From Laetmonice hystrix (lineage: Eukaryota): DNA of 64,000 bases. The notes under the pieces were generated by a model, which ran no database searches, was not told the origin of the DNA, and saw nothing but the letters and a program-made list of their open reading frames with translations. Made by a program: the position numbers and the translations under genes. Of this stretch, positions 15,001 to 49,428 are shown piece by piece. The DNA is taken from the NCBI GenBank assembly GCA_965235115.1, contig OZ249448.1:20522001-20586000 (forward strand), written 5' to 3'. The first letter of the stretch is position 1. Each line of letters opens with the position of its first letter.

Positions 15001-18000
15001 AAATTCTACTCTCTGGGAACCCATGAAAGTGTGCTATCTGATTGGTCCAGATTTGTCTGATGCGTTATGGCGCTTCGTGTACGAGTTTGTGAAACAACAT
15101 GCGTGTACGCAGACCCCTTGTCACCAGGTGGCTGATGTGGCAGCAGGCTTCACTCTGCTCGTCATGGACAGGTGAGTCGGGTGATGAAGGACAACTGATT
15201 GTTCTCTCTTAAGTTAGGTTACAGAAAGTCTGAATTCATGATCTTATGACTATTACATAAAGTTCAGATGAGAGAAAACTGGGCAAAAACAGGGCTCTGC
15301 TCTAGGGCATACAAATTTTGAAGATGCATCCAGCATGTTGGACTTGATTTTCATTGAGGAACAATGGACCCTCAATAATAGGTATTGTTCTCTGGTTCTT
15401 AGCCCGCCTAGTATCCAGACAGGGATGAAGGAAGACTTTCAGCATTGTTTCCAATACTTTGGATGGGCTGAACATGTCAACGCACGGTAAGTCCAGTGAA
15501 AGTATTTTATATTAAATACACATTTGGAATGTAGAAATAACATGAGAACTGATTTTAAGTGCCTGCATCATATTTTGTTCTTTACATTTTGAAGAAAAAA
15601 TGTTTTGATTTTATCTTCATGACAGTGTATCTTGTCGGTTCCTGTGTCACCTGCTGACTAACCAATCAGCCATTGAGAGACTGAGTGTAGATGTGACCAA
15701 TCATGAGGCAGTTCTCATAGCAGCCTGGTTCCGCTGTGCCTGGACAGTTGCACTTGATGACCCCCAGATGATCCAGTTGACAAGGTAGGAACCTACAGCA
15801 CCACAACTCCAATCTAAAATCTCACCACATGAGGTCTGGCAATCTATGCAAACATGTAGGGTTCACATAGCGCCAACAGGCCTTGCAACTTCTGTGAAAC
15901 ATTAGTTTAGAAGTCGTTGAAATGTCTTTGTACAGAAGTCAGAAGCAAGAGTTCTATTCATTCAGATCTGATCCATTGATATCATTACTGTTTCTGAGAG
16001 TAAAACAAAAGACTCAAGTTGTGGCATGTTTTATATCTAGACTGATGATAAAGCTGGAGGAGATGAAGTCTATCTTTGTTGAGTCAGACATCCAGCCCGG
16101 AGACAGCCCGGGATCAGTCCTGTCTACATTTATACAGTCACTGGGACACAAATATGGCCACCTCCAGGTAATGTCGATATATGTCCTTCCAACAGAACAT
16201 CTTTTTCACAGTTCTTGAAAATTTAAGATTGTGCATTCTGATTGGCTGGTTAAAGAAGGCAACGGCAAACCAACCTATTAGGAGTTAAAACTTAAGCTTG
16301 GTTGTTTGTTTTTCTTCCATGTCAGTGTTGTTGTTTGTTCAGGACCTGAGGGAGAAGGTTGCCTTCCAGCAACACGTGCAGGTGTTGCTTGGCGACGTTT
16401 CCAAACAAGTGACGTCATCCAAGCTGGCTTCCTCCCAACCTGAGATACTGCAGGCCATGTACAATGTGGGTGGTCTGCTGGTGAAACACTGTGGCAATTT
16501 CCTCTACATCAAGGTCAGTGCTGTCCCTGGGGTCGGAGGTCATAGGTCAGACAGCTATTCTTTGATATAACAATAGTTGTGAGACTGAGAGAGAATCGTT
16601 GTAATGCTGAGGTAGATATGGAGATGCTGGTACTCAGAGGTTGTATATTTCACACTAATCCTTCCTCTACAGACATAAGTCTACCGTCATTGTACATTAG
16701 CATTGACTGAATAACTTGAAATGAACCTCACTTGAACAATTTACCACAATTATTTTGTTATATTTTAGTCTCGCCCTGACTGTGTTTTACCAATGCTGAT
16801 AGAACGTCTCATCCTGCCCCGAATGTTGCTGACTCCCAATAAACCTGTGCCAGGTCCGATTCTCACAGCCATCAGGGAACATCTTTATCTGGTCAGTGGT
16901 TCCCTTCACATTGAATCTCTATTGGACATCATACAAGTGTATTTATTATAAAGGCATGAGTGTGTACAACATGTCTATGAGACTAGGAATATTGCAATGT
17001 AGTTCTGTCATTTTCTTATTTAAAGTACTGGTAAGTGCCCTTTTGGTGACATTATGCTTTGGTTTCAGTTTGTCCAAGGTCTGGGTTGTCTGGACTACCG
17101 TCGTGACCCATACATCCAACGCAAACTGAGGGACGTTGTTATTCAATATCTGCCGCGGTTCTCAGAGGTAATCCCAGTGTTAACTTTTTGACTGAATTCT
17201 ACTTGCAGCAAACCTCAAATGGTTTCTTATTGAATGAATTTTACTCTGTGCAGCCCCAACCAGATGTTCACTAATTGACTGAATTCTGCTCTTTGTCTTT
17301 ACAGCGGACCTTTAGTACAAGCAATGTGACATCTGTCCATCCCCTGCTTGTAAGTAATAATATAAGTATAAATTATAGGCAGCAAAGCATCATGTTATCA
17401 TAAGTAAGACAGGAGAGAGGGGCAGAAAGTTGAACACAAACATAAGTTAGGATCTGTACTAATCTCGGATTCATCAACTACATGTAGAGATTAGTTATGA
17501 AAGGCTCCACCAGGGTGGCAGCACTGAGCCTTAGGAAATTTTTTGATCATATCAAGTCCAAGAAAAAAAATCTATAGATAAAGTTTGATTTGTTACATCT
17601 TATAATATCATTGATCTGTGCATGTACTGTTTGTGTTGTGGAGACTGCCATGTCAGAAACGTGTGGGAGGCAGGTCAGCGAGGAGTCCGTCCAGTTCCGC
17701 CACCATGTACTGCAGGTTGTACAGACCGAGTTTCTGACACTGCGTGGTGTAACAGTCCACGGCCATGCCAGTCTGGTCAGTTCTTCATCTCTAGCCTTGC
17801 AAGCTAAACCTCCTAGAACTTTATTTTACCATCAGGTTTCTTCCATAAAATCCTTGAAAATATTCCTGTTGTTTTTATAAATATATGCAGCGAAATTATT
17901 TTCTTCTTGTGCCAGGCTTTGGGATTTCTCATGGACCTCTCAAGGAAAACGCTGAACTCTGACATCATTGCCAGGTAAGGAAACCGAATTCATCTTCCCT

Positions 18001-19083: not shown

Positions 19084-20405
19084 CCCCCCCCCCCCCGCCC
19101 ACGGACAAGCCCTGGATACAAGCGGCCCACCAGCGGTACCATGACAACCAGCATCACGTCACCGCCCGCTCGCTGGCTCCCCCTGGCGGCGGCAGGCGCA
19201 GTCTGTTTCGTCACGGTTATATCATAACCGGTAAGCATGTTATGTAAGTTCCCGGATGAGAACAATGGCCTCCATCTGGCCTCGGCGGCGGCGGGACAAA
19301 AATAGAAGCCAGAGTGACTGTAGCTGTGCTGGTCGAGTTCACGTCTACCAGTATCGATGTCGGCCCCTATGTTGAAAGGTTGGACTGGAAATTTATAGGC
19401 TGTGGCAAGCTGGTGGTAAAGTGACAATGCATGTATTATAAGAAGTAAGCGGGAAAGTGAGTCTGTGTTGTCAATGTATTATAAATCAACTTGTTACGAT
19501 TATAATAGGGATGGATGGAGAGGCATTTATCATCTAACAGGAGAATAGAGTGTCAACACGTATGAGACAATAAACTTGAAAATATCGATGATTTTTATTT
19601 TTATTATTTTGAATATGCAGTAAAGGTTTACAGTAAAGTTACTACAGCCTGTATAATTATCGTGCTTCTAGAAGATCCAAGTCTTATTCCATATAAAATA
19701 TACACCAGTCAAGTACATGTTCCGTACTTTGTAAAACCACAATGGAAGTACAATGGGTTCACCCTCAGAAACCCCCACAAACGCACAAAATAACATTCTG
19801 AATTCATTTTCTGACTGCAAGCCTTAAAAATTATTGTGCTCCACATATATTCCAACACACAGTCTATATTTTTCACTTTCATGTTTCACGTTATTATCGC
19901 ATGTATACTTTCCTCAGATAATACTAGCTAATTATTATCATTGCTTCAATATCGGAGCGAGTATTTCATCTTCATCGTCCCAGCAGTCGGCGCGTTAACC
20001 ACACAACTTACTAAGTACATGTGTATTCTCAATCATTAATTTTGCACACATAATGTCTCGTGGGTACAACATCACAGAGTTTTTCCCCTAACAATAAAGT
20101 AACATATCTTTTCGATAGATTGTTCTAATTAGACATCACCCAATATTAGGCCTATTACAGATGAGTACAGGGAAACGGAGGCAGGTTGGTCGCTTGCGAA
20201 ATAGTATCAAATGTGTTTGGACTGTTTGAGTAGGTGCTGTTGGCAAGTGCCATCTGACATTGAAACGAACGTTTAGACTAATTAACATTCAAGTCCCATG
20301 AATAAACCGTTTTAACAGACTTTTTCTACTAGCAAGGCACCGGTGTTTGTAACCCCTGAGTCGGTCTCCGTTACCATGGAATCAGCAGTCGGACGTTGAG
20401 AATGT

Positions 20406-22044
20406 TCAGGGTTTCTCGCCTCTGGCCAGGCGTTCATTAATTTTGGCCACCACCTCAGGCAGCTCGGCGATGCTGTCTATGACGTAATGCGCACCCGACC
20501 TGCGCAATGTCTGTCGCGAGCGTTCGGCGCGGGCCTCCATGTCGTCTGTTGATATCTCCGACTCCTGCTCCAGACTGTCCACATCCATGTAGTTAGAGTA
20601 GCGGGCGACGCCGACACCCCAGCACCCGGCCTCCAGGGCTTCCCCAACCCCGGATACTGTATCGTCTACCTTGACCACGGCCTGGACGGGGTGGACGTCG
20701 AGCAGGTCCATGTTCCGATACACCATGAATGGTTTGGGCCGCGCGCCATGCACGACCTCATCTCCGGCAACTGACGCGTCTGGCACGTAACCTTGCTTCT
20801 TGGCCTCCTCTAGCAGCACGTCCACCATCGACTTGAGGAAACCAGTCGTGCTGCCGATCTTCAAGCCGAAGTCGGAGCGGAGGGTGTTGATGGCAGTGGT
20901 CGTGCCCGGGATGAGGTCTGTGTAGCGGCGGAGACAGGCCAGCTGCATGGGCACGAAGTCCTTAAACATGTTGTCCACGTCGGCCTGGCTGGGCTGGCGG
21001 CCATACTGTTCAAACCATCGCTTCCTCACTCCTTCATTTTCCGTGATCGCCTGCCAGGAACATCAGATCGTTAATCAGGGCTCCCTTGGGGGGTTAGCTA
21101 CACATTGCCAAATCAAATTTCATACCATATTTCCAATTTTTTCTTGATCTTACAATTTTCCAAAATATATAATATTCCGCTATTCCCCAGACAAATCCAT
21201 GGCTATAGATCTACGCCCCTGCCTTTGTCCCATTTTCATCTCATATCTTCCTTCTGATATATATAGGCGTAGGCCTATAGCCTATACTATAGTAGGACTA
21301 TATATAGTAGTAGATCTACCATACAACATGATATACAACATGAGCCCCCGCCGCCCACACCACTACAATCCCTTCTCAAACTATGGCATAAATATAGGCC
21401 TACTCTTTCCGGGCTATCACAAGTCATTATTTTGACATTAATTAAATCGTGCATGGCCAGTCTATAAGCCTATAACATTCATCATTAAATTTGCTGCACT
21501 CCGGCGCACCTGTTGCCTGACAATGCTGCAGGCTCTAATATAATATTTTGGCGAGATAATCAATCTATTAGTGCCGGACAGGTGTATTTTTCACACAGGT
21601 GTGCTGTCGACAATGACAATTTGTGTTGAGGTAAAACCGCGATCGTGCCATTGTCATTTATAGGCCTATCCTTCAGAATGTATCGTTTTGGGAGGAATGC
21701 CAGAAAGAGAAAGAAAGCTTGAAATAGAATGGAAATAGAATTTACCCGTACATTGAAGAAACTAAACCACTATGAAAATAAACACAAATATATGACATTG
21801 AATTTTAGGTTTATAGGCTTATTTGCAACTGAAGACCACTGACCTTAATGTGGAGGTCTTTCCTGAGTCCCATGGGTTCGCGGGCCTCGGCCATGGTGAT
21901 GGGGACCTTGTGTTTACTGAACACATCGACGAACACTACGGCTGGTGCGAGAACATATTTATCGGCTGTGGTCCCACTCCAGTCCATGATGGCCGCCCGG
22001 AGGGGTCCCGTGTACGTCCGGGCGAATTGGTAGTATTTGCTCAT
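20406..22044 (-). CDS. phnX: Phosphonoacetaldehyde hydrolase (phosphonatase, HAD superfamily), 281 aa, 2 coding exons (22044-21844, 21050-20406)
   Basis: Motif I DWSGT (nucleophile Asp), cap PMGLRKDLH (Schiff-base Lys plus His), motif II GSTTGF, ARPKPFM, motif IV KVDDTVSG, C-terminal GAHYVIDSIAEL. Phase-0 GT-AG intron (AAG|gtcagt ... ttcctggcag|GCG). A further acceptor lies just 5' of the ATG (5'-UTR intron). Confidence 0.95.
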
Positions 22045-25000
22045 CGTGTCTGGAGAAAAAGGATGAAGGTGGTTGGAATTATACAACTACACTGTGGCCT
22101 TCATTATTTCTTTCACTTAATCTATACCTGCGCAGCGGATCGCCGGCAGCGCCTGTTCTTCCCCCGTTGCCAGCTTATAAACCAGGCCTTAGATCTATAA
22201 TTATGGTTAAGGGCAGGGGGCCACACTCTCCCGAATGGCAGACTCAAACACAATCGTATTTATTTCAACATTGAGTGACTGTTTTTCCTTATCTCATACT
22301 TCTGTCAGGATACAGGCCTAGGCCTATCTATATCCCTATCCACTGTTTAGATCTATTAGGCAGTCAACTCTTAATTGGAGAGGGCGGCTCGGGGGAAATC
22401 GTCCAAGGTCAAATATAAACCACCATCCATGGTTTTCGTATCGAGGAAGGGCAGCCACAGTGACCATTGATGGATACGGTTCATGGCATCCCATCATGTT
22501 TATTCCATACCACGTGACTGAGTGCAATCAAGCGTGCAATCCATGCCCACCTGCTCCCAGGGCTGTTGAGGGCGGCAGCTGCATATAGGGCGAGTGGTGA
22601 TTTTACGTCTGCAGAGGCCTTTTATAGCAGGGCCTCCTTTCACGTAGGCCTACAAAGTGTCGCCCATGCAGCCGTTAGGCCTAAAATATGTCGCCCATGG
22701 ATGCAGGTTGACAAAATTGAATGACTAAAGGCGACAAGTATAGTGCCTTATAACATCGAACTGTGCCACGGTTCGGCCTCGACATTATCTATACCGGACA
22801 CGATATGGAAGTCAGTCGACCTCTAGCCTATTCTCGGGTAGACCTACATCAAAGATTTGATAACATATCGGGGATACACGCGTAGATTCTAAATTTTGGG
22901 AGTCTTCTATTATTGTCACATAGGCTAGTGAAAATTCCTTAACGGAGGCATGCACTGCCTTCTGTAGAAATCAACTGCTTTGTCTGCCGTTGCATGGTGA
23001 CTCCGGTGCAGCATCTCTGGCAGCAGTCCACGTTCACAAAAAGACCGAGTGCAGACGAGACTGGATCGAGTGCAGACACCCGCATCGATGATCCAAACCA
23101 TACAAACTGTATAAGATCGAGGTCGAGAAAGAAAGTATAGGCCTATATGTTGAAATCTTCTCCTTGTAATTTAAGCCTATACCGGAAATCTGCGGAGACC
23201 ATTTCGCTGCGCATAGATCTATCCATAGCTAGGGGCCTATTAGTCCTGTTTGTGGTTTATTGTAGGCTATGGGAAAGGAGACTAGGCCTATAGGCCTATA
23301 TATAGGCCCTAGGTGAAGAGACGGGTTTTTTCAATGGGAGGTAGCCTGACATGTATTTTCAGACCAAACTGTAGACTATACGCTGGCACAACATATAGGC
23401 CTATACGCGCGCACAGTGGCGGATTTAGGGGGGCACAGCCCCCTCCCCCCCCCCAATTTTTTTTTTTTTTTCAAAAGTAGGGTTCTGGTCCTCACATACT
23501 GAGTGACCCTTGCCCATGTCAGGCTATATCCATTCATTCACCCATACACCTGCCCCCTCCCCCCGCCGAAAAAAAATCCTGGATTGCTGGAATATCTCTG
23601 CCCAGCGCGCCCCAGGGCAGTGACGCAGCCCCAGCTTCTGACGGCTCCAATCACACTTAACTAGATCTGTCCATGCATCCTTCTGCCTCCTGCGCGTAGT
23701 GTAACGCAGTAACGCAGTGCAGTGGTCAAATATTGGCTACAATCACACCATTGTGACAACCTCCACCACCTCGCCCCAACCACAGGAGTCTGACACATTC
23801 ATTAATTGGCTGTGTTTTATTTATTATAGTACTATAGCTACCGCCCGCCCAATGTGTCAGACTCCTGTGCCCCAACACTATATACCGGGCTTCATTCATC
23901 CACACGTACGGTAGGGGCCTATAGCAGGCCTACCCATCTACTGAATGAGATACAGATATCCTACATCACACCACATAATGATCAGTCTGAACCAGAGTCA
24001 ACGCAATCTCGACCTCTACTTACACTCGTTTGTTCCAGTTACGGTGACTTAAACCGGAGTGCTTGTTGTGCTTTTTGGTCCTTGGTGTGATTGTCCGAGC
24101 TCTGGAGGATGGCGCTGTGACAATGCTGACTGCCCGAGGGGAGGTTGAGACCCTCTATATATAGCCCTATATCAGAGTGTTGTGAGAGGGAGAGGCGGGG
24201 CGCCCAGTCAGCGTTCACACTGGCGATGGTCGTGGCGCCACCTACTAGTAATCGGCCACACTACCGTGAACTGATACCAAGCATGGTCCACCATTCGTGC
24301 TGATACCACATGGACAGTTACGGTAGGCCCTGGCAGCAGGGGGTTGGTCTATAAAGTTGTCTTGTTACCAAACTGGGGAACCCAAGAAATCCTGATCCAT
24401 TCACGAACGACATGTGACCCATTCGCGCGCGACTACACCCTCATATATAGTTCCAAGGCCTAAATCTACAGCTTTTTAAAGGCTAATTGATTAAAACAGA
24501 TCTAGATCTAGTAGGCCTTTACTTTCCTTTAAGTTTTTTAGTTGCAAAAAGAAAGAAAAACATGTAACAAGCTTTTTGTATGGGGTTATTGAACGTTACC
24601 GTGTTACTTAAATTCTTAGAGGTTTGAAATTCACGGACCTCGAGAAAAGGTGAGCTGAAAATACGGAGGTTTCCGTACAAAATACGGATGGTTGGCAACA
24701 CTACATAAAATGTAAATAGGCTACACATGCAAAGGTACAGGCCTATACTGATAAGTAGGCCCCCTAAGTTAAATTATCTATTGAATTAAATAATCACATA
24801 TTAGGACTCTGTTCACAATTAGTGTGGTCTATCTAGACACCTTCTCGATAGTGATTGGACTAGGCTATACTATTCCGGTTCTGCCAAGCCTTAATTCAGT
24901 GTCAGCCATGTAGACAAACTGGACAGATTGGTGGCCGGTCGGCTGGAGTTATACGGCCTAGACCTAGATCTATACCGAGACAAGCCGGGGCAGCAGGTAG

Positions 25001-28551: not shown

Positions 28552-31500
28552 TTATCTACTGCTGCCTGGACCACTGTCCGGTTTTTCCTCACGCGGACGC
28601 CCTGTACCAAATATGCTGGTGTTTCGCGATGCTTGGGCTGGTGGAGTGGCTTGAGCTTGGCTTGACCTAGGCAACAACTTTAGCTTTGGCCGTGCTGCCG
28701 CAGATTCTGAAAAAATTCAATCCCCATCAAACCCAGTTCAAACTCAGGAAATGACTAGGAGCAGTGCTTTAAGTACAACACTGGCTTTTCTACATCTAGT
28801 GCAGATGACAATTTAGCTCACATTTATCCTGCAAATAATTTCTAAAGACTACATCCTAGCTCGCATACTGCAAACATTTATATTTTTGGGACATACTTAT
28901 GATACTATGATTTGCAATGGTTCATAATTGATATTCCTATGCAAGGAAAACACTCAATGTTTACTAATGATTGCTTTCAGTCCCAATGCCTCAAATACCA
29001 ATGTATATTTATCTTGAAGTCCCTTGTCCCATCCCTTTCTTATGGAAAGAAAAATATCTTATGTATCTTAATATGGCAACAAATGCCTAATTCTGTATTC
29101 ACTGTACAGGATCCAGTGGAAAATAAAAGAAAAATAACCTTATAATTAACCAAAAATGCTTATTTTTACCCCTTTATTATCACCATGATTTATCTCCATG
29201 CAATGCAAATCCTTCTACCAAAAGATGAAGTTAGCAGTGAAATCATCCTTCTTGAATCACCATGGCCTGCACCTCTGGTACTTCAAATAACCTTAAATAG
29301 TTTGTTACCTCAGAAAACTAAAAGTTTCCTTTGCTTTCAATCCGACTACCATAATCTTAAGTGTACAAGCCGTGGCCCTGTAAGTCACAGGCCGTTTTTG
29401 GAGCAAAAGTCATAGAAAAAGAAACTTAATGTTTTTGTTATTGTTATTGCCATTGTTAATCGGGCTGTTGCTTTCTCTGGGCATTGAAAACAATAGGACA
29501 CACCTTTATTTTTGGAATCCATCACATATTGACACATAAAACAACATGGGTGTTAAAGTGTACACCACAACTGTGGTATGTATACATGTATATAGCAGGC
29601 CAGTTCCCACTGTTGACCTAGGGTCCTAGATAATATCAGTAACTAACTTATAGGCTATCCTCAAACACATGTGGCCATCTAGTATAAGCTGCACCCCCAA
29701 CTTATGAATAATTTGAGGAAAAAAGTGTGGCTTGTACACAGAAGATTGCGGTAACAGGGGAGTAAAACCAACCCTGCCATTTCAAGAAAATTACAAATAA
29801 GAAGAAGGTAGTACCTTATCCTTTAGTCAGTGAAGCCCACTACAATATGCTTATTTGGTATCTTGACCTCAGCTTTTTAAAAAAATGAATATTACCTAGA
29901 TATTCAGATATGTATCATAAATAGCATAACTGCAAATCTACATGCGTACATGTATGATTGATGCAATGTCCTAAAGTTACTGATTGAATAGGATATACCA
30001 GTAATTTCTTTATTCAAATTTCTCACACAACTTGCTAAGTCAAATTTTTTTCACAATGTCTACCTTTCTGAAGCAGTTAAAATCTTTAATCTACTTATTT
30101 GGGTTTCAGGTAAGGTTACTTTAACACCTCTTGATAAAAACTCAAGAATCATCTACAAGCTAAGTGGGTCAACATACCTTTTGTCATATTGCAGCAGCCT
30201 TCATAATCACCTTAAAGCTAGAAATATCAAATTGGATACGCTTACCTGCATCAGGCTCCGGAAACTCACCTGGGGACGGTTCCCGAAATTCACCACTATC
30301 CGTCCGAGGCCTTCCACCTCTGAATCCACCGCTGCCGCCATCGCGGTCGTAGCCACCTCGCCGAGCCCCGCCACGCCCTTCTGATTTGTCATCAAATCCA
30401 CCTTCGAACCGGTCCCGGCCGCCTCCAAAGCCTCCACCTCGGTTGTCACGGTCGCCAAAGTCACGTCGACCACCTCCAAAACCTCCACCGAAGTCATCGC
30501 GTCCACCACGGCCTCCTCCTTTATACATACATGGACATCTACATTAGGTACTGTCTAATATCTATCTTCTCCAGCTCAGCCAAAGAAACTGATTCCTACA
30601 TGAACTTATTATGTGACTATTTCTGAGAGCTATGAACTGTCTTGGCACTGAAACAGCAATAAACATTTCAAAACACAACCACTAACTGAGGTTGAGGTTT
30701 ACTTGTTCCAAAACAGGTACTGGATAAAATGTTCAGACATGTGCAGAAAAAAAGGTTGATATTTAAGCAACCTACCAAAGTTATCTCGTCCACCTCCACC
30801 TCCACGTCCTCCTCGGAACCCTCCGCGATCGTTCTTACGACCTTCTGCTATATCAACTCGCAACTTCCTATCTTCAAAAAGCTGTAACCAAACACCGAAA
30901 CTTCGTCACAAAATCTTTGTTATCATGGAAAAACTCTGTCACCTCAAGAGAAAACACTTGCATTTAATGATATGACACCAGACCTTAGGTTTTGACGGGC
31001 GCCATCGCTCTTGCGCGCCATCATGCCCCTAAACAGCTTAGCAGAGGAGCAAAAATATGCGCCCATACTTGCTATTGAATAGCGCACCTCGGCAAACATG
31101 CTGGAGGGTTTCTAGATCACCGGTGGTTCGGCCCCAACATGATAATGTGGACATCGATCAATCCAGCGTGTACTTTCGTCTGCCATGTAGAGTTTAGACA
31201 AGGCAGTCAGTATACACTGAGGAGCTAGAAGGCACAGGTGCACCCCTCTCTTTACCGGTTCACTGATTCCAGTGTATTGATTCAGTGTAGTCATGAGTTG
31301 CCAGACGGTCTGGAGTATAGGACAGGAATTATCTACTCTTTACAATGATACAATCACACCAGGGCCTGGTTCTTTGGTTGAGCTTGAGTCTTGAGATGAG
31401 AATCTCGTCTAAAGCTCACCTCTGTGAGACTGAGATCGTCTCAGGCTCACCGTTGGGTTTTTTAGTTCCGTCTCATCTCACGCTCTGGCTCAGATTTCGT

Positions 31501-39200: not shown

Positions 39201-42200
39201 CTAGACAGCGGAAGGAATGTTCAGAGACCATGTGTGGCACTACCTGGAGGAAGAGTTGAGTACTGGATGGAAGGACTGTACTCCAGACACACTGCAGGTG
39301 TTATTAGTAGTCAACGACCATCACAAGGTTTGCAGGAGATTTCTACTCAATTCATTATTAATATCACTATCAAAAAGGAAATAATATTATGTACTTTTGA
39401 ATTGAAAAAAACTATTATTTACAGGTGGAAGATTTTCATATCTGTGTGATCTTCATCTGATTTCAGAGCTGTGTTAGCAAGAACTTTTTGTCTGAGCACT
39501 GGAATACAAAGAACATATTAAATACCAAGAATCATACCTTCCTGAAGGCCATCATGTCGGTGAGCATTTTCTCCCTCTCCCTTTTTAACAAATAAATTCT
39601 GCTAGAAAGATAGTAAAGAAATAATGATAACATATGATAACTTCTTTGTTAAAACTGTCTATATGTTCTCTATATTTCAAATTTAAGAAAACGTTAAATA
39701 TACTTTGAAATGGAAATGAGGAATATGTATAGCAAAGCTTTTGAGCATTGCAATCAGTTTTCATCTTGGAAGCTTTCATCCTCAGGAATCGGTGGGAAGC
39801 CTCCCTGTAGTTCACAGGGTGTGTCCTATGTTGGTGAGAAAAGCCATGAAGAAGGAGGAAGTCTTCACACATTTCTGGAGTGAAATCATTAATGGTATGT
39901 CTGTACATCCAGTGATATAGTGGCCATAGCAAACAATTGATTTTATGGGCTCTCCGAGGTCAAATATTGATGAATGATTCAAGGCTAGTCCAGATTTTAG
40001 TGTCTCTAACAAAAGTGTACTCTAGGACATTTAGCCCTTGTGTTTGTATGGCATGACACATTCTGAATATTGAAGCTATATTTGGAAATGGTTAAAAAAT
40101 GATCATTTGTTTTATAAATTCTTTTATATGTGCTGAAATATATATTTTTTTCAGATGGCTTTGCATCACAGAGTCTGAAGCATCGATCCCTTGCATTCCG
40201 CTTAGTGTCATTGTCATTGCCCTTAGCTACTACTGCAAAACAAGTAATTACCTCTGCTTCCTTAAAATTGTATGAATTAGCTTAAATTTTAGGGTGCAAA
40301 TAATGCTCATATTGAAAGACGACCCCAAGTGCTAAAACTTGCTTTGACAGGCATTGAAATTCATCATAAGCAGAAGAGATCAATTTTGATAAAGGGTTAA
40401 TTATTATGCAGTATGGGGAAGGTGAATAACAACCATTACAAAATTTAATCGCTTCCAATTTTAACTTACTAAATGTGCACACTGTCGGGTTTTTGGCCTT
40501 GAGATTAAGTGATGCTTTCTTCTAGGTGACGACCATCCTATCAGACAATGTGGTAAAGGCTATAGTGAACAGCAGGACTGCACACTTCAACCACAAACCT
40601 CTCCACAATGCAGCAGGATTCTTGGTCAGTATGGTAGACATTGACCATAGGGGGTACTAAGTTTTTGTGAATTATTAAAATTTATTTTAGGTCTCATTCT
40701 TTCATAATTTGTCAACATCAGTTTTATTATAGGTTTTATCAGATTTTCTATCAGTTAGTTTGTCGCTTTGACAAATTTTGAGTAGATATTAGTCTTTTAT
40801 TTTATGTTTCTTCATTGCAGATAGCTGATATCGTGAAATTTGCAGGAAACTGCCCAGACGGTGATGTCCAACTAGCAGTAATCCTAAGCCTACTGAATTC
40901 TAAAGAATCGTGTATGTTTGATCCAAGGACACGAACAAAGGCCATCAGTGAAATCGAAGAAAAGGTGTGCCCTTTCAGTTCATGTATGAACACCAGGAAA
41001 TGTTATATAAATATTAATAACACATGACCGAAAATGTACAGAACTTGATGCTGGTTTCTAATTGGAATTTTTTGAAATCTGATTTATTCCATGTGTCATT
41101 CAAAGCTGTTTCACTTTGCAGTTGAAACCAGATGCAATGGAGAAATGGACAGAGCTATTGATGGAAATGATCCTCGGTAGAGAAGAACTACCAACCAAGT
41201 AAGATGCTTTCTTCAGAGAATTGCATTGAAGCATTGGTGACAGTAGTTACCCTCTCTCTCCTACTGATTATATGTTATACTGATTATATCTTCATATTGA
41301 CTTCCATCAGAGAGGACAACGACATCGACATCGATACCCGAAAGTCATGGGCAGTGTTTGAGCTGAGTCGCTTACTCAGTAAGGCCAATGACAGGGAATG
41401 GCAGTTGAAAATCCTCAAGTTCCTCTTCCTTCATGGCTTTTTCAAGTTGGAAACACCTGCAGGCTTCGTACATGTACGTGCAGATAGTATTGCGAGGGTC
41501 TTAAAACCATCAAGAATATACCTAGAGTTTGATTTTTTTATGCCACATCTAGGACTACTTGTCGTTATGGTGTATGTTCTCTATTGAAAACAGGCTGTTT
41601 CACCAGGACTTTCTCTGTTTCCACAGGGCAGTAAACTTCTAGATAAGGCCCTGAGTCCCCAGACCTGCACAGATTTGCATACAGCCTTCTTCAAATCTTT
41701 GGACCGACTCGATGCCCAGCCCCACAAGGCTGATGGGTCCTCCAGACGAGACAAAAGACCCTACATTAGTATGGTCCATGAGGTGGTCCAGTATGCCCAG
41801 GTACTATTAGACACAAATAGGTTTCTTTTTATCAGGATCTCCAATATTTATGTTCACTGATATACTTTCTCCAGTATACTAACACATTCTGTAGTTGTAA
41901 CCTGACGATTATTTTTTTACTAATTGCTGCATTACAGACCCTTATGTCTACTGAAGGACTAGAGATGAGGCAAGAATTTTCTGTAGAAGTTAAACAGCAC
42001 TGGGAAAAGATGTTTGAAACAGTGGAGAAAATCGCGGAAAAGGTACGTGGTGTCATGTGTAATAGTTAAACAAAGAGAGATACCTGGGCAATTAAATAGT
42101 ATTGTTTTTGATTTTTTTACTTGGGGAGTTGATTGGCTGGTAGATAATAGATATAAGGTCTTTGGAGGTGTAAACAGACCATTATTATGCAATTCCTTTC

Positions 42201-45200
42201 AGCATGAGAAGGATGCCAAGATTGGCGAGGGACATGCATTTGAGTTGTTGTTCCTCTGTCTGGGCCTTCAACTATTTTCGGAGCCCCAAGCAGCAATGGA
42301 TATTCTTGAGGTAAGTCAATTAGAAGGGCAGATCGTTTAGCTGATTTTGTAAATTTTTGTTTCAGACACATCTGACGCTATGAGTTGTGTGTGAATCTTT
42401 GATAAATACTAAATAGATAAGTTGCTGTCTTTGTTTTCCTTTAGGATGGTTTTCAAGATCACCAGTTGCAAAAAAAAACTTAGAATTTGATGCCTGATTT
42501 TTATTGTAAGAGAAACTGTTCTCAGAGCATGGTTTGTCATGAAGTGACCTTTGTCCTACAGGATCTTTACATTTGTTACAACAAAGCCTTCAAACAGAAG
42601 AGACGGGTGTCTATGAAACAATCAACAGCAGGTGGTAGATTTCCATATTATAAAAGTTTTGAATTCATCTCTTTGGAAATGATGTGGAATCTGTAGATAA
42701 ATTGGATTATTCTGCCTATTTAGTAAAGATATTTGGGAGCCAGTTCTTAAAACTTTCATTCCTGGAATGCTGAGAAAACTGTGAACAAAGTGGCAACATT
42801 TTTTCGATACCCTTCATTAACCTTTTTGGGTTTGTTTGAGCTCAGGACCAGATTGGATGGAGGTTGTCACAGATGCCTCGCTCAGTCTGCTGTCACAGGG
42901 AAGCCACCTGGTGAGAAAGGTGGTTGTCTCAGTCTTCGCGATGCTCGCCCCCCATACAACAAAGGCATCACTGAACCTCATTCTCAATGTAAGTACATGT
43001 AGCTCCTGTTGCGTACCAACGTGTGTTATTACAAACAAGCAGGAAATTCCCATCATGTTTTTATTTTTAAATAATTGGATTATTACAAAAGATAGCATAA
43101 GGATGTTTGTGGATGTTTGTCTAATGCTTGTTGGTTGATGTTTAAGGTGTTTAAACCCAAGACAGAAGAAGAAGAAGACCTTCTAGAGTTTGAAGACGAC
43201 GGTGTGTACTCATTGTTAATCTATCAACTCTCAGAGCTGAAGTTGTTTGCCTGTGCTAATGTTTGCATTATTTTGAATCTTTACTTTCATCATGATCCAC
43301 ACACACTCGGGGCATATCAGTGCCTTACCTAGATCTGGGTAAGACTTGAGGCTATCTGTTGTAGATGAGGAAGATGCCGCTGAAGAAGATAAGGAAGGGC
43401 AAGCTGAGAAACAAGAAGAGGAGGAAAGTAGTGAGGAGGATGAAGAGGAGGATGAGGATGAAGAGGAGGCGGAAGAAGTAGACGAGAGTCTGCGTCTGTC
43501 CTTGAAACAAGCTCTTGGCAAGGCAGCCATTGGCAGTGATGAAGAGGTTACGAAGTCTTCCGTTATTTTCCAGTCTCCAGTCTTGTACAATTCAGAATAT
43601 TGAGATAACCGCGTCCTTGAGACCACCTTGCCAATACCGGTACCTTCACATTAAATCCTCTCAGTGGTAAGGTTAGAAAGACTGCAAGGTTTATTGCCGA
43701 CCCCGGTATAGTGTCAATACAATTCAAATATTCATTTGATTCTCTGTTGACCAATGGTGTTTTGACATAATTAATCTGTTTGACCCTTTGGTGAGCAGGA
43801 TGATGAGGAGTCTTCTGGGTCAGATTTTGATGATGAAACCATGTTCAAGTTGGATAATGCGATATCTGCTGCCTTCAAAAGTATGACAAAAAACAAGAAG
43901 AACTCGAAATACGTCAGGGAACAGAAACAACAACTGAAGGCGTACAGAATGAAGTAAGGACATGAAGTTAAATCCAAAACTTAAGGTCTGAAGGGGTAAA
44001 TGCTGAACGATATGAAGACGGAGGCTAATATAACTTACCAAAACGCAAGAATTATCACTTGTTTTCTTTGTTGCATCAGAATGATGAGTATGTTCCTAAG
44101 TAGCATTATGTTTTTCTCTTTGACCAGGTGTTTGGATCTGATTAAAGCGATCGTTGACAGTGAACCCAGTCCAAGTCTGGCCTTGGTAAGTCACTGTGTG
44201 CCCCATCATGGGGCCCCATAGTATGTGAACCGTCCGGGCACATTCTGTGAGCTGAGCGGTATTCAGAAACGGAAGAGAAATTAATTGTTTCAGTATTAGA
44301 CCCTGTCTACTGTACTTGTCTGTTTGATTGGAATGGATGGATAACAACAAGAATTCTACATGTAAAAGAAAGAAAATAAATGTGAAATTTGGCTAAAGGT
44401 GAAATTTGGCAGACATTGTGAAGAACCTTTAGGTACATGTACGTCAAAGATATGTGTACACATGTATAAAATATGTCATCGCGTGACATTTGTAGTGATG
44501 TGAGGATGACGGTGGCAGCATGTATGTTTACAGGAGCTGGTTATGCCACTCTTAGATTTGATGGATCATGGTGTCAGAGACAAAACATATCGGGACGAGG
44601 GAAACCGGGCCACAAAAATCTTCAGAGCTTTGGTAGCCAACAGAAAGGTATGTTCCCCCACCACTACAGCAGCACCAAAAAGCTGCTGAGAAGGGGAGGG
44701 GAGAGGGACGTCACCATTTTCATAATTACCTGTCATAAAAACGCTGATTAGATTGTATGTTCTTGCAGAGGAACTTGAAGGTGGCATGAAGTTTTATTTG
44801 AATGCCATCAGTAGCTGAAAGATTGGAAATGTTAAAATGTTAACTCTTTTTGGCAGGTCCTGCCCGATCCGACCCTAGATAGGGATGCTTTGCCAGAAGA
44901 GTTCCAAGAACTTGTAAAGCGATCCACAACAGGTAAGAAAAATAAATCATGTAACAAAAAAACCTTTTTTACATAACATATATTTGTATAGATTGGTAAG
45001 TGGCTCTGTGAGGTAAGAATGGACTAAGTTTATCTTCTTGCTTTCAGTTGCCGGTCCACAGATGGTGAAGGATGTAGCGCTCGCATGTCTCTTCTTGGTG
45101 AGCATTGAAGAGATAATCTTGATCGCATAATACTAATAGGAGAATTCAACAGTCTGAGTTCTTTACTGACTCCGAGTTGATGATTTATCATAAGTATTAT

Positions 45201-48200
45201 AACAAGGATATTTTTAATGGGTTTTTAACTTCACAGAGATTTTTGGCATGGTGCTGTAGACAGTTGTCTCAGTGTTGCTTGCACTTTGGCAAGAATCTGA
45301 ATCATCCATAAATGTAAAAATGTCAATTCAGAATTGCTGACGTGTGAGAACTTGACAGAGTTCATGGAGTTTATGTACCGGTACTGATGATTAATTGGTT
45401 TCTACGTCTACAGATCCGCCTACAGCTTGGCCTTGACATGGCCAGTGGGCCATCTCCATTGAGGACTCGTGCTGGGTCAGTCCTCAGGGCCAAGGTCAAA
45501 AAGGACAAGGTAAGCGCATACAGCCAGCAGATTTAGTAACACAAAAACTGTTACTACAATGCACAGCAAACTTTACAAACTTAACTTTCCTGCATGAGAT
45601 TAAGGTAGAAATCAAATCTAAGAGTGGCATAATCAGCATTATGTCAGATTTAGTGTTTTAATTGCGATGAACGTCGCCAGGTGGAGCTTGCGTTGATGCA
45701 ATAATTCCTCACTAGATGGCAGCCAGTTGTATAGCCAGGGAGTTGTGAGGGTTTCCACCAGAGGGCACCTGTGAAACTGTAGGGTAATGTTATGAGATCT
45801 GAAGTTGATGAATGTGCTGGTTGTATTGACAGGTGCTGGGAAACCAGCAGAAGGTTCTGGACATCATCAAGGCGAGTCTGGCTGATTATTGCAACAAGAG
45901 GTATGATAAATATTCAACAAGAGCCACATGTCAACTACTGTCCTATTACTTCTACCATTATGTCTGGGGCCTTATTAAAATCAGCGGTTTCCAGTAATAG
46001 GCTGAATAAAAAACAAACAAAAAATAGAAATGGGCTATTTCTATTGTAACATAAAAAGTGCCGTTATATGTTTGAGAAAAGAATGCATGAAAGGCACCAA
46101 CAATTACTGCACCTTGTTTTTTCTGTATTACAGAGAATCACACTTCAACCATATCTTTTTCTACACATTACTGTCAAGGCAGTCAGTAAGCATAGGCCAT
46201 TTTTTATTTTACTGTTTGAAATCGTTGATCGGATTTTTGTTATAGGGAATGTGTTAATTTTTATCAAAAGGATTTTCATCCAATACCTGGCAAATGTACA
46301 TACAGATGGGATAATTTAAAAAATATTAAATATACTGATTTTCTAAGTGACTAGTATAGGGACGCTTTGAATCTGCCTTGTCATCATTTGTTCATTGATG
46401 AATGATTTCAGTGTAGAATTAATATGATAAGACTTTTTGTTACTGTCCTTGATGTTGTTGTGAGTTGAGGCATGACTGTTGTGCGTTTCCTTTGCTCCCA
46501 GAGCATGCTGTGGGCCCTGACTGACCAACTCCTCGACCTGGCCACCAATATTGACGTGCGAGTCTTCTGTAGGGTGAGATTCCTTGGACTTTCTGAACAC
46601 AGCAATTCCCTTTCTGTAGTCTCCAGATCTCTGTTTTCATTATCTCTATTCATTAAAAACTTCAATCTTTGGTTTCAGACTCAAGTTTGGGCCATGCTGG
46701 CTGCAATGATCACAAGATCAACGGTAAGTGTTTGACTAAAGTGGATGGTTGATTTTCCTGTTGTAATTAATCTAGGTATATTTTAATTTCTGGCTAAGAT
46801 TGCATTAGTCACTGAGGAAGACGTAAATGAGAGATTTTTTAGACTTGATATGTGCTGTGTACCAGTATTTGTAAGTCCTTGCTCCAGTTTTTCAAAACAG
46901 TAATTTCTACCTTAATCTCATGCAGGAAAGTTAAGTTTGGAAAGTGTTTGCTGTGCATTGTAGTAACAGTTTTTGTGTTCGTTGACAGGCAGCTGACGTG
47001 GACTCGGAGAGTTGGTCTTCTTTCATGGACAGACTCGTTGCTGAGATACAGATGGTAATTAAAATTCTGTCCATTTGATCATGCGAAGGGCACAACCTAA
47101 AATGCCGTCTCTTTAACCATATAGGTTGTCGTCTTTTTCAGTGCACATTAAGGGAGAAAGATTGCTGACCAATTCACCAAGGCTGTATACAACAAAACCT
47201 TGCCAGAACCAGTAAACTCAAAATTCTGTCTACAGGGGTCACGTTCGTCCGCTATTTAGCGGATTTCCGCCATTTTTTTTCTAGAAATCGTCATTTCTGA
47301 GATCGATGCAGATCCGTTGAGCGCCGGGTGCAGATACACTTTCAGCTATTTTTTTTTGGTTCATGGCTCGGTGCCCTGTGTGTATGATATGATTGATAAG
47401 ATAAGGTTCTAGGGAAGATATTATCATCTAGGGAGGAATATGAGTTTCATTGTATGCGACATTTTGCAGGCCTTTGAGAGTATAGATATGGATGACTTAA
47501 AGCCGAAGATTGTCCAGGAACTACTGGCTGTTTCTGTGAGAGTCTGGACGACCTGCCCACACCTCCAGGTAAGTGTGAGACCTTCCAATTACACATTGAA
47601 GTGAATCGCTTTATCCTCTACACAATTACAATGTCAGTTTTTAGAATATTGGTATGCCTGATTTGAGTTCACAGGGTATGTAACCAGGACATTAATTTTT
47701 TTACAGTATTTGTGTTTTGGTGATTTCAGCAAAAGATGTTCTCTGATAATGTGATAGCCCAAATCAGAAAGGTGAAGGAACGGCAACTCACCAAGACTGA
47801 CCTGAAGCGTGCCTGCAGAAAAGTGCTTGTTTTAGTTGGGTGAGTGAAATTTTGCCTATACAAATGTAACTGCATCCGACAGTCTGTAAGTGTACAAGGC
47901 CATTTTCTCTACAAATTATACACTTGCCAGGAACATAAGAACTGAATGAAAAAGGCTTGGTTCACTACGTGTAGATGGAGTTTTTCTAATTCATTGTAAC
48001 TTTGTCAATTCTAGGAAAGTGTCTGAAAAGAATAGGCAGGCCAATCCAGCCGGAGATTCTGTTGCCAAGAAACGTAAACAAGACGCAGGGCCCACTGAGC
48101 TCAATGGCCATGGCAAGACGCCCACGTCAAGGAAGAAGAAGAAATCTGAGATCAAGGATGAAGATAAAGAAGCAAGTGTCCATGGAATGTCCCCATCCAA

Positions 48201-49428
48201 GGTAAAACCAAAGAACCTGGACGATTCCTTGGATGAGTTAAGCACCCCAAAGCGCAACCTATATGCAGAGATCAAGGGAGCGTCATGGAACAAAACAAAT
48301 AGGAAAAGGTCGACATCTGAAACCGCGGCCAACGGGACGTTTGTAGAGTCAAGTCAGGAAATGGATCAGGGGGAGGCACAGCTACCAACAACGCCATCAT
48401 CCAAGAAGAAGAAGAATAAGAAGAAGAAGAAGGAAAACGAGTCCCTGAGAGAAGTGTCCACACCAAAGGCCAGCCTGTGTGCAGAGATAGAGGCAGTATG
48501 CACGGAGGGCGAGAAGCGGTCGTCGCCACTTTCTACAGGCAATGGTGTGGAGAAGGATCACACTGAGGAGAAACTGCCCACGACGCCACCCTCCAGAAAG
48601 AAGAACAAGAAGAAGAAGAACCAAACCGAGTGTCTGAGAGAAGTGTCCACACCAAAGGCCAGCCGGTGTGCAGAGATAGAGGCAGTATGCACGGAGGGCG
48701 AGAAGCGGTCGTCGCCACTTTCTACAGGCAATGGTGTGGAGAAGGATCACACTGAGGAGAAACTGCCCACGACGCCACCCTCCAGAAAGAAGAACAAGAA
48801 GAAGAAGAACCAAACCGAGTGTCTGAGAGAAGTGTCCACACCAAAGGCCAGCCGGTGTGCAGAGATAGAGGCAGTATGCGCGGAGGGCGAGAAGCAGTTG
48901 TCGCCACTTTCTACAGGCAATGGTGTGGAGAAAGACTCAGAGGAGGATCACACTGAGGAGACGACGCCACACTCCAAAAAGAAGAACAAGAAGAACCAGA
49001 ACAATTCACTCAGAGAATTGTCTACCCCAAAAATTGAAGCAGTTTCAACGGACAAAAAAGGCGACAGCAGTTCGAAAGTGGAACCCTCTGCTAACGAATC
49101 CTGGACGCTGTTAAAAACACCAACATCAAAGAAAAAAGAAAGCGGAGTTGAAGAAGTTAGTGGAAAAGATGTAACAGAAGTTAGGTCTGTCAGGAAAAGT
49201 GCCAGGAAATCTCGCCAGTCTACGGTCGGTACAGGGACGCCAGTGTTGAGGTCAGCGGTCACGGTGTCCGATCCAGATGGAGTGGGAGAAGGATTGGAGG
49301 GAACGTTTACCCCAGTCAAAATGAACGACAGACGCCGGTCAGTGAGAATCTCAATGAGATTGGACGTTTCTTCTCCAGCAAGGTTAACACCAAAACGCAG
49401 GAAGTCTGTAGCAAAATCAGAATTGTAA
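36201..49428 (+). CDS. MYBBP1A: Myb-binding protein 1A / Pol5-family nucleolar protein, multi-exon, with a long Lys-rich last exon
   Basis: EFLAFFWTLSEEQDGRRLSATKEMVEYL (human EFLDFFWDIAKPEQETRLAATEKLLEYL), DLDYALKRLLKGLASDR (EMKYALKRLITGL), acidic tract followed by SLRLSLKQALGKAA, DDETMFKLDNAISAAF, VLDLIKAIV/ELVMPLL; basic C-terminal exon ending TAA at 49426-49428. Confidence 0.93.
36747..37100. mobile_element. MITE with an 8-bp target-site duplication (hAT/MULE/P-type TSD length)
   Basis: CTGTAAAG at 36739-36746 and 37101-37108 flanks long inverted arms TTTCGGCCGCCTGCTGGTTCGGCCGCCCGTAT / ATACGGGCGGCCGAACTGGCAGGCGGCCGAAA. Confidence 0.85.
37166..37744 (-). repeat. Dispersed GC-rich element, copy B (MYBBP1A intron 1), internally expanded
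   Basis: Its reverse complement matches 33808-34040 at both ends (35-bp exact match at the outer end), with roughly 300-350 extra internal bases. Confidence 0.85.
45660..45806 (+). ncRNA. Candidate intronic box C/D RNA, SNORD97-like, with a predicted guide for tRNA-Met(elongator) C34
   Basis: Box C-like GCGATGA 45664-45670; box D CTGA 45799-45802; guide GTTATGAGAT 45789-45798 complementary to the elongator tRNA-Met anticodon arm GUCUCAUAAU; central foldback; sense-oriented within intron 45510-45832 of MYBBP1A. Confidence 0.6.
48439..49040 (+). repeat. Coding tandem repeat, 189-nt (63-aa) unit, about 3 copies plus degenerate flanking copies, in the MYBBP1A last exon
   Basis: GAG(T)..CTGAGAGAAGTGTCCACACCAAAGGCC recurs at 48439, 48628 and 48817; peptide LREVSTPKAS.CAEIEAVC.EGEK..SPLSTGNGVEKDHTEEKLPTTPPSRKKNKKKKNQ. 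Confidence 0.95.

Follow-up and report, generated by a model that had tools for sequence, protein, structure and literature searches.

A spliced, transcribed host gene for a predicted phosphonoacetaldehyde hydrolase in Laetmonice hystrix

Phosphonates account for much of the organic phosphorus in the sea, and degrading them is usually seen as the work of bacteria. One phosphonate that is common in nature is 2-aminoethylphosphonate (AEP), whose C-P bond is broken by phosphonoacetaldehyde hydrolase (PhnX). We analyzed a PhnX gene in a 64,000-nucleotide stretch of DNA from Laetmonice hystrix (hereafter the window; C18:20522001-20586000 of a 627-Mb genome in 35 contigs) and find that it is a real, spliced, transcribed and host-encoded nuclear gene that is catalytically intact as judged by its sequence. 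Its product is predicted to be a phosphonoacetaldehyde hydrolase (EC 3.11.1.1) of the HAD superfamily. For the explanation favored here as a whole, i.e., a functional single-copy PhnX with a role in phosphorus recycling that derives from a single old transfer, we estimate a joint probability of about 0.8.

Phosphonoacetaldehyde hydrolase has been listed among the candidates for horizontal gene transfer in anthozoans (eLife 2016, PMC4878875). According to a 2026 preprint, PhnX and the AEP transaminase PhnW are present in nearly all corals, are expressed and are read as an AEP-degrading system, and the coral PhnX clade groups with Symbiodiniaceae, apart from other Metazoa (bioRxiv 10.64898/2026.05.06.723128). 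The hemocyte proteome of Biomphalaria contains the phosphonoacetaldehyde hydrolase-like protein XP_013069854.1 (PMC6281880). A 2023 expert review covers microbial phosphonate degradation only and describes phosphonates as "even more cryptic in eukaryotes" (PMC10574752). The gene in the window is like the coral genes in being a host-encoded, expressed animal PhnX connected with AEP degradation; the coral PhnX differs in its reported Symbiodiniaceae grouping, which would imply a different acquisition. Animal PhnX is already known: many lophotrochozoans, as well as Priapulus, have proteins annotated as "phosphonoacetaldehyde hydrolase-like", and for corals it has been discussed and its transfer published. 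The original prediction, made from the letters alone, is therefore not new in concept, and the window gene adds a member to a known group. Its own protein has no entry in the protein database searched, and at this locus an animal PhnX has a clean gene model with transcript support.

The gene lies on the minus strand, with its start codon at 22044 and its stop codon at 20406. Two open segments, 22044..21844 and 21050..20406, join into an 846-nt coding sequence (CDS) that translates into 281 aa without internal stops. They are separated by a coding intron of 793 nt (21843..21051, GTCAGT..CAG, phase 0, GC 0.39). A 392-nt contig of sequencing run X4 joins 21049|21843 and skips exactly 793 nt (CT..AC on the plus strand), matching the predicted splice. 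The same contig fits the locus only to 22049 and then runs 108 nt further. This extension (X4 record 28) maps to 24024-24131, directly before a GTAAGT donor at 24023, and 24024-24053 agrees with its first 30 letters except for 1 mismatch, where 0 matches are expected by chance. A second intron of 1974 nt (22050..24023, GTAAGT..CAG) thus interrupts the 5' untranslated region (UTR). The full-length 281-aa protein and the single coding intron of the original prediction are borne out, and so are the 5'-UTR intron and its acceptor at 22050; the donor proposed near 22120-22150 was rejected, as the transcript contig uses the one at 24023 instead.

Exon 1 (24024..24131, at least 108 nt) consists of 5'-UTR only. 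A TATA-like box, TATATATAG (24155..24163, minus strand), is found ~24-32 nt upstream of where the transcript contig ends and may serve as a promoter element. As neither exon 1 nor the 5 nt ahead of the start codon contains an ATG, PhnX has no presequence, and because the protein lacks an N-terminal extension and its mRNA an upstream ATG, it is probably cytosolic. Exon 2 (21844..22049) comprises the 5 nt of UTR and codons 1-67 and carries DWSGT, with the nucleophile D21, and MGLRKDLH, with the Schiff-base K62 and with H65. The coding part of exon 3 (20406..21050) comprises codons 68-281 and the stop codon, with KIGSTTG (T136), GARPKP (R171), KVDDT (D196, D197) and the C-terminal tail RLARGEKP; all five catalytic motifs named in the original prediction are present. 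The 3'-UTR (19646..20405) is at least 760 nt long, a lower bound set by X4 record 26 (1052 nt), which spans 19646-20687 unbroken.

Four public runs from one specimen, none labeled as RNA, contain the PhnX locus. Three of them have genome-sized contig sets, in which contigs pass through PhnX into the flanks, with a depth like that of the flanks. At this locus only exons are covered by the fourth run, X4 (58 M letters). Because neither this exon-only coverage nor the splice joint has a counterpart in the three DNA-like runs, we infer that X4 is a transcriptome. The CDS variants among the contigs of the specimen are three synonymous changes and S260T.

A genome-wide search found a single PhnX locus, 20.5 Mb into a chromosome-scale contig. 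The gene is flanked by MMS22L-like and MYBBP1A-like genes, both eukaryote-specific: the exon at 16298-16567 (plus strand) matches MMS22L_C with 28.3 bits, and four plus-strand exons at 41204-43600 match DNA_pol_phi/MYBBP1A collinearly, with profile positions rising from 373 to 704. Pfam scans of the ten longest open reading frames (ORFs) of the window gave weak matches only, and smaller exons were needed to find these two families. Two introns, a spliced transcript contig, host neighbors and even DNA depth over gene and flanks all place PhnX within the host genome, in agreement with the earlier view that the locus lies among animal genes and is no contaminant.

The protein scores 290.6 bits against TIGR01422, the phosphonatase equivalog (cut-off 220), over profile positions 2-251 of 251. 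It matches solved PhnX structures over the full length, best 3iru (7e-56) and then 2iof/1fez of Bacillus cereus (~1e-52). The catalytic residues of the B. cereus enzyme map as D12 to D21, T16 to T25, M49 to M58, K53 to K62, H56 to H65, T126 to T136, R160 to R171 and D186 to D197. In HAD motif I, D21-W-S23-G-T25 aligns with D12-W-A14-G-T16, the residue at Asp+2 is non-acidic, and D, S and T are invariant; in the cap domain, the aligned K62, H65 and M58 are likewise invariant. D21, T25, M58, G59, K62, H65, T136, R171 and D197 do not vary among 94 animal-clade sequences or the bacterial relatives.

Bacterial PhnX (TIGR01422; B. cereus 1fez, 2iof, 1rql) thus resembles the animal protein in length, in full-length alignment (1e-52) and in the nucleophile Asp, Schiff-base Lys, cap His and Met, motif II Thr, Mg-binding Asp and the Arg that replaces the usual motif III Lys. 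In contrast to the bacterial genes, the animal gene is nuclear and unlinked to phnW, and has two introns, a TATA-like promoter and a long 3'-UTR. The protein differs from that of B. cereus by Ser at Asp+2 (A14 to S23), Val for Cys22 (V31), Phe for Tyr128 (F138), a DD..G motif IV (G185 to D196, D190 to G201) and one residue inserted ahead of the Arg. D196 of the DD motif supplies the second acidic ligand, the position of B. cereus D190 being Gly, and the bacterial relatives and 3iru are alike in this. Since these positions, too, are invariant across the 94 animal-clade sequences and the bacterial relatives, they are traits of a subfamily and not signs of decay. The best solved-structure match, 3iru (PDB "phosphonoacetaldehyde hydrolase like protein"), shares VDDT..G and the RLARGEKP tail and differs in having DWAGT instead of DWSGT and Tyr instead of F138. 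All the subfamily traits recur in PhnX of marine Proteobacteria (Rhodospirillales, Kiloniellales, Rhodobacterales, Pelagibacteraceae and gammaproteobacterial metagenome-assembled genomes), with 58-68% identity, DWSGT, F138, VDDT..G, ~279-283 aa and the nearest position in the trees; these bacterial genes are intronless.

By homology to the B. cereus enzyme, the cap-domain K62 would form a Schiff base with phosphonoacetaldehyde, turning the carbon into a good leaving group; D21 would then attack the phosphorus, with Mg2+ held by D196/D197, and hydrolysis of the phospho-aspartate and the enamine would yield phosphate and acetaldehyde. HAD enzymes shift substrate easily, several second-shell residues differ from those in B. 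cereus, and even 3iru was deposited only as "phosphonoacetaldehyde hydrolase like", all of which could be taken to mean that the protein has acquired a new function as a hydrolase of a phosphate ester or of another phosphono-aldehyde. We consider this very unlikely: the score is well over the equivalog cut-off, the Schiff-base Lys and the cap His and Met, which ordinary phosphatases can do without, are invariant, and PhnW is present in the same genome.

The genome encodes a route to the substrate. No phnW is found in the window, as had been stated before; a seven-exon PhnW gene sits on another chromosome at C3:10867044-10871764, unlinked to PhnX. All seven exons match models of AEP transaminase (PhnW/AepZ) best, with rough sums of exon scores of 396 bits for NF010006 (cut-off 296), 376 for TIGR03301 (cut-off 360.8) and 378 for TIGR02326 (cut-off 400.8), and the gene carries the pyridoxal phosphate-lysine motif SSANKCIQGVPGF. 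Genome profile searches also found a five-exon gene for phosphoenolpyruvate mutase (PepM) on C6 and a five-exon gene for phosphonopyruvate decarboxylase (Ppd) on C11. The genome search proposed with the original prediction has thus located all three enzymes, and all three genes bear introns. Phosphonoacetate hydrolase (PhnA) was searched for in the genome and not detected. A further three-exon gene, C3:39353947-39358325 (minus strand; L066-L068), matches the model of PhnZ-type HD-domain oxygenases, TIGR03276, over its full length (positions 3-176); its exon sum of ~174 bits lies below the cut-off of 214.6, and TmpB and PhnZ1 come next among the models. The gene may encode a second, oxidative C-P cleavage enzyme of the animal.

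Gene content thus predicts that the animal is capable of producing phosphonoacetaldehyde and AEP as well as of breaking the C-P bond, i.e., that one genome encodes both AEP synthesis and AEP breakdown, which makes animal C-P cleavage directly testable by enzyme expression and assay. Within the same animal, AEP or a pathway intermediate would be fed to PhnX. Its most likely role is the recovery of phosphate, along with acetaldehyde and alanine, from AEP that would be freed by turnover of the animal's own or dietary phosphonolipids and phosphonoglycans. As suggested before, the animal may in this way recycle phosphonate phosphorus without microbes, a plausible reading to which the pathway found across the genome adds strength. 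Because the animal itself makes phosphonoacetaldehyde, through PepM and Ppd, PhnX could equally control a biosynthetic intermediate, with the main task of regulating AEP biosynthesis in the animal, or of serving it as a safety valve, by clearing excess reactive phosphonoacetaldehyde instead of recovering nutrient phosphorus. Full conservation of the catalytic residues would suit such a function as well. Sequence cannot separate the regulator from the recycler, and the two roles are not exclusive. In bacteria, however, the PhnW-PhnX pair is catabolic (PMC3266647, PMC10574752), and we regard a chiefly regulatory role as unlikely, if a serious contender, and phosphate recovery as favored.

The nearest proteins are translated from unnamed transcript contigs, with up to 79% identity. 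Annotated orthologues (66-77% identity) come from bivalves, gastropods, a chiton, Lingula, annelids and Priapulus, and the best named matches are to bivalves (at most 77%) and Lingula (71%). The nearest bacterial genomes are marine metagenome-assembled genomes, mostly of Alphaproteobacteria, whose PhnX is 54-68% identical, of equal length and of the same traits. A library of representatives at 50% identity collapsed the animal clade as well as its nearest bacteria and was useful only for distant rooting. Cluster look-ups yielded names for Glandiceps and Rhodoferax only.

A quick tree of 155 rows unites the window protein, all animals and 72 unnamed sequences in a single clade (SH-aLRT 99, stem 0.36), in which Priapulus is sister to the lophotrochozoans, and the bacteria fall outside. 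When 110 distant representatives were added (quick tree of 174 rows), the animal clade kept an SH-aLRT support of 94 and lay inside a set of 60 rows supported at 99, which otherwise consists of proteobacterial (and two myxobacterial) PhnX and unnamed sequences; its neighbors are PhnX of Actinomycetota, Acidobacteriota and Rhodoferax. A careful tree of 63 rows keeps the wider set (96/98) and shows the animal clade as a comb with forks below 80; its root was not inferred. On the question of vertical versus horizontal origin posed by the original prediction, the quick trees place one animal clade (99 and 94) in a strongly supported set that otherwise contains bacterial PhnX, and the 63-row tree is comb-like and unrooted here. 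The PhnX of the hemichordate Glandiceps talaboti (XP_078000349.1, 308 aa, 50% identical) belongs to a different strongly supported set, together with a transcript of a marine eukaryote. Forcing Glandiceps and the protostomes together costs 44 log-likelihood units, with p = 0.047 in the approximately unbiased (AU) test, a borderline value for groups that were chosen after seeing the tree.

Two observations were made along the way. Intronless genes for a 281-aa PhnX occur in marine metagenomes on ORF-poor contigs (L055, a 110-kb ENA contig, and L056-L058) and fall inside the clade of pteriomorph bivalves; they are probably bivalve host DNA or cDNA. A bacterial source for such metagenome matches of ~71% identity was rejected on account of the ORF-poor contigs and this placement, and they were treated as animal DNA. 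In Priapulus caudatus, contig KQ716104.1 (L061:366-583) carries a partial, diverged second copy of the first ~74 PhnX codons, 47-60% identical, 2.4 kb upstream of the annotated gene.

The annotated genes of molluscs, annelids, Lingula and Priapulus form one clade with the window gene and have identical catalytic residues, and they differ from it in the number and position of introns. There are no coding introns in Liolophura, Pecten and the bivalve-like contig L055, one in Sinanodonta (codon 41) and one in Owenia (46|47), two in Priapulus (codon 204 and 254|255), four in Mactra (codons 47, 90, 129 and 163) and five in Lingula. Positions are therefore mostly unshared between lineages, and three lineages are intronless. 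The first Lingula intron matches that of the window gene in codon boundary and phase, Lingula K66|A67 aligning with K67|A68.

The best reading of these data is that protostome PhnX, one clade among marine bacterial PhnX, would go back to one old transfer from a bacterium to an animal that preceded the protostome radiation, and that individual lineages would have gained spliceosomal introns afterwards. The main alternative is vertical descent of a PhnX that was present early in eukaryotes or animals, or that arrived with the mitochondrial ancestor, with many later losses and no separate bacterial transfer to protostomes. Such descent would suit the uninferred root, the unresolved comb of animals beside bacteria in the 63-row tree, the borderline AU value with its post hoc groups, the intron position common to the window genome and Lingula, and the many Alphaproteobacteria among the nearest bacteria. 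It sits poorly with an animal-bacterial identity of 54-68%, which is about as close as bacterial phyla are to one another, with the subfamily traits and equal length common to animal and bacterial proteins, with the Glandiceps protein in a different strongly supported set, with the coral clade that the preprint places with Symbiodiniaceae, and with introns that are mostly unshared and missing from the chiton, the scallop and the mussel-like contig. On balance we think vertical descent rather improbable and retain the single old transfer.

The PhnX CDS stands out in composition, as the original prediction had noted, with a GC content of 0.591, a GC content at third codon positions (GC3) of 0.745 and a CpG observed/expected ratio (o/e) of 0.92. 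The coding intron has a GC content of 0.39 and a CpG o/e of 0.61, the whole window 0.433 and 0.63, and most neighboring exons GC contents of 0.40-0.50, GC3 of 0.38-0.61 and CpG o/e of 0.30-0.68; the exception is an RGG-rich exon at 30187-30528 (GC 0.567, CpG o/e 1.17). A coding sequence so much richer in GC and CpG than its surroundings could point to contamination, misassembly or a very recent insertion specific to this species. This is refuted by the two spliceosomal introns, the transcript contig that confirms both the coding and the 5'-UTR splice, the DNA contigs that cross gene and flanks at even depth, the eukaryotic neighbors, the position 20.5 Mb into a chromosome-scale contig and the orthologues throughout protostomes, and we assign it a negligible probability. 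The orthologues have a similar composition: the chiton CDS (GC3 0.656, CpG o/e 1.02) is also GC-richer than its flanks (GC 0.39), and PhnX of L055 has a CpG o/e of 1.18. Both orthologues checked thus have a CpG o/e near 1, and the tree indicates that the acquisition predates the protostome radiation; the high GC3 and CpG o/e of PhnX accordingly do not mark it as a recent foreign arrival. In the same genome, exons of PhnW, PepM and Ppd range from 0.65 to 1.06 in CpG o/e. As general background on invertebrate gene-body methylation, a high CpG o/e would point to a sparsely methylated gene, and such genes are often inducible or confined to particular tissues.

A broader reading combines at least three acquisitions of PhnX from microbes by marine animals (the protostome ancestor, hemichordates and corals) with a complete host-encoded phosphonate cycle in protostomes, in which PepM, Ppd and PhnW would serve synthesis and PhnW, PhnX and possibly the PhnZ-like oxygenase breakdown. 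We put this joint proposal forward tentatively, at somewhat less than even odds. If it is true, animals themselves, and not only their microbes, mineralize C-P phosphorus in the sea.

Several points count against the explanation favored here. PhnX beside the synthesis of phosphonoacetaldehyde would amount to a futile cycle unless the two were regulated or compartmentalized, and because of this problem phosphorus recycling is proposed and not concluded. Where the B. cereus enzyme has Ala14, Cys22 and Tyr128, the subfamily has Ser, Val and Phe, and its motif IV is DD..G instead of GD..D; literature searches found no enzyme assay of any animal PhnX. Run X4 has no RNA label, and its RNA nature is inferred. 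With a comb-like animal clade and no inferred root in the 63-row tree, the direction and timing of the transfer are likely and not proven. The intron shared with Lingula fits either common descent or parallel gain, the latter being possible because the junction is an AAG|G proto-splice site.

Three minor features of the window were also noted. Within PhnX intron 1, a 31-nt word at 22145-22175 is covered by contigs ~5 times as deeply as its flanks in each of the three DNA-like runs, and many short contigs stop there; it is probably the edge of a dispersed repeat. The word TAGGCCTA occurs 43 times in the window, against ~0.9 expected, and two copies within PhnX intron 2 vary between contigs of the same specimen: in X2, an insertion of TAGGCC behind 21472 creates a copy, and in X2 and X3, six letters missing at 21661 (21661-21668) remove one. 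Downstream of the DNA_pol_phi exons, an open exon of 469 aa at 48019-49428 (plus strand), rich in Lys, Ser and Glu, contains three near-identical repeats of ~70 aa (…LREVSTPKAS.CAEIEAVCTEGEK…KKNKKKKNQ…) and probably forms the C-terminal tail of the MYBBP1A-like gene.

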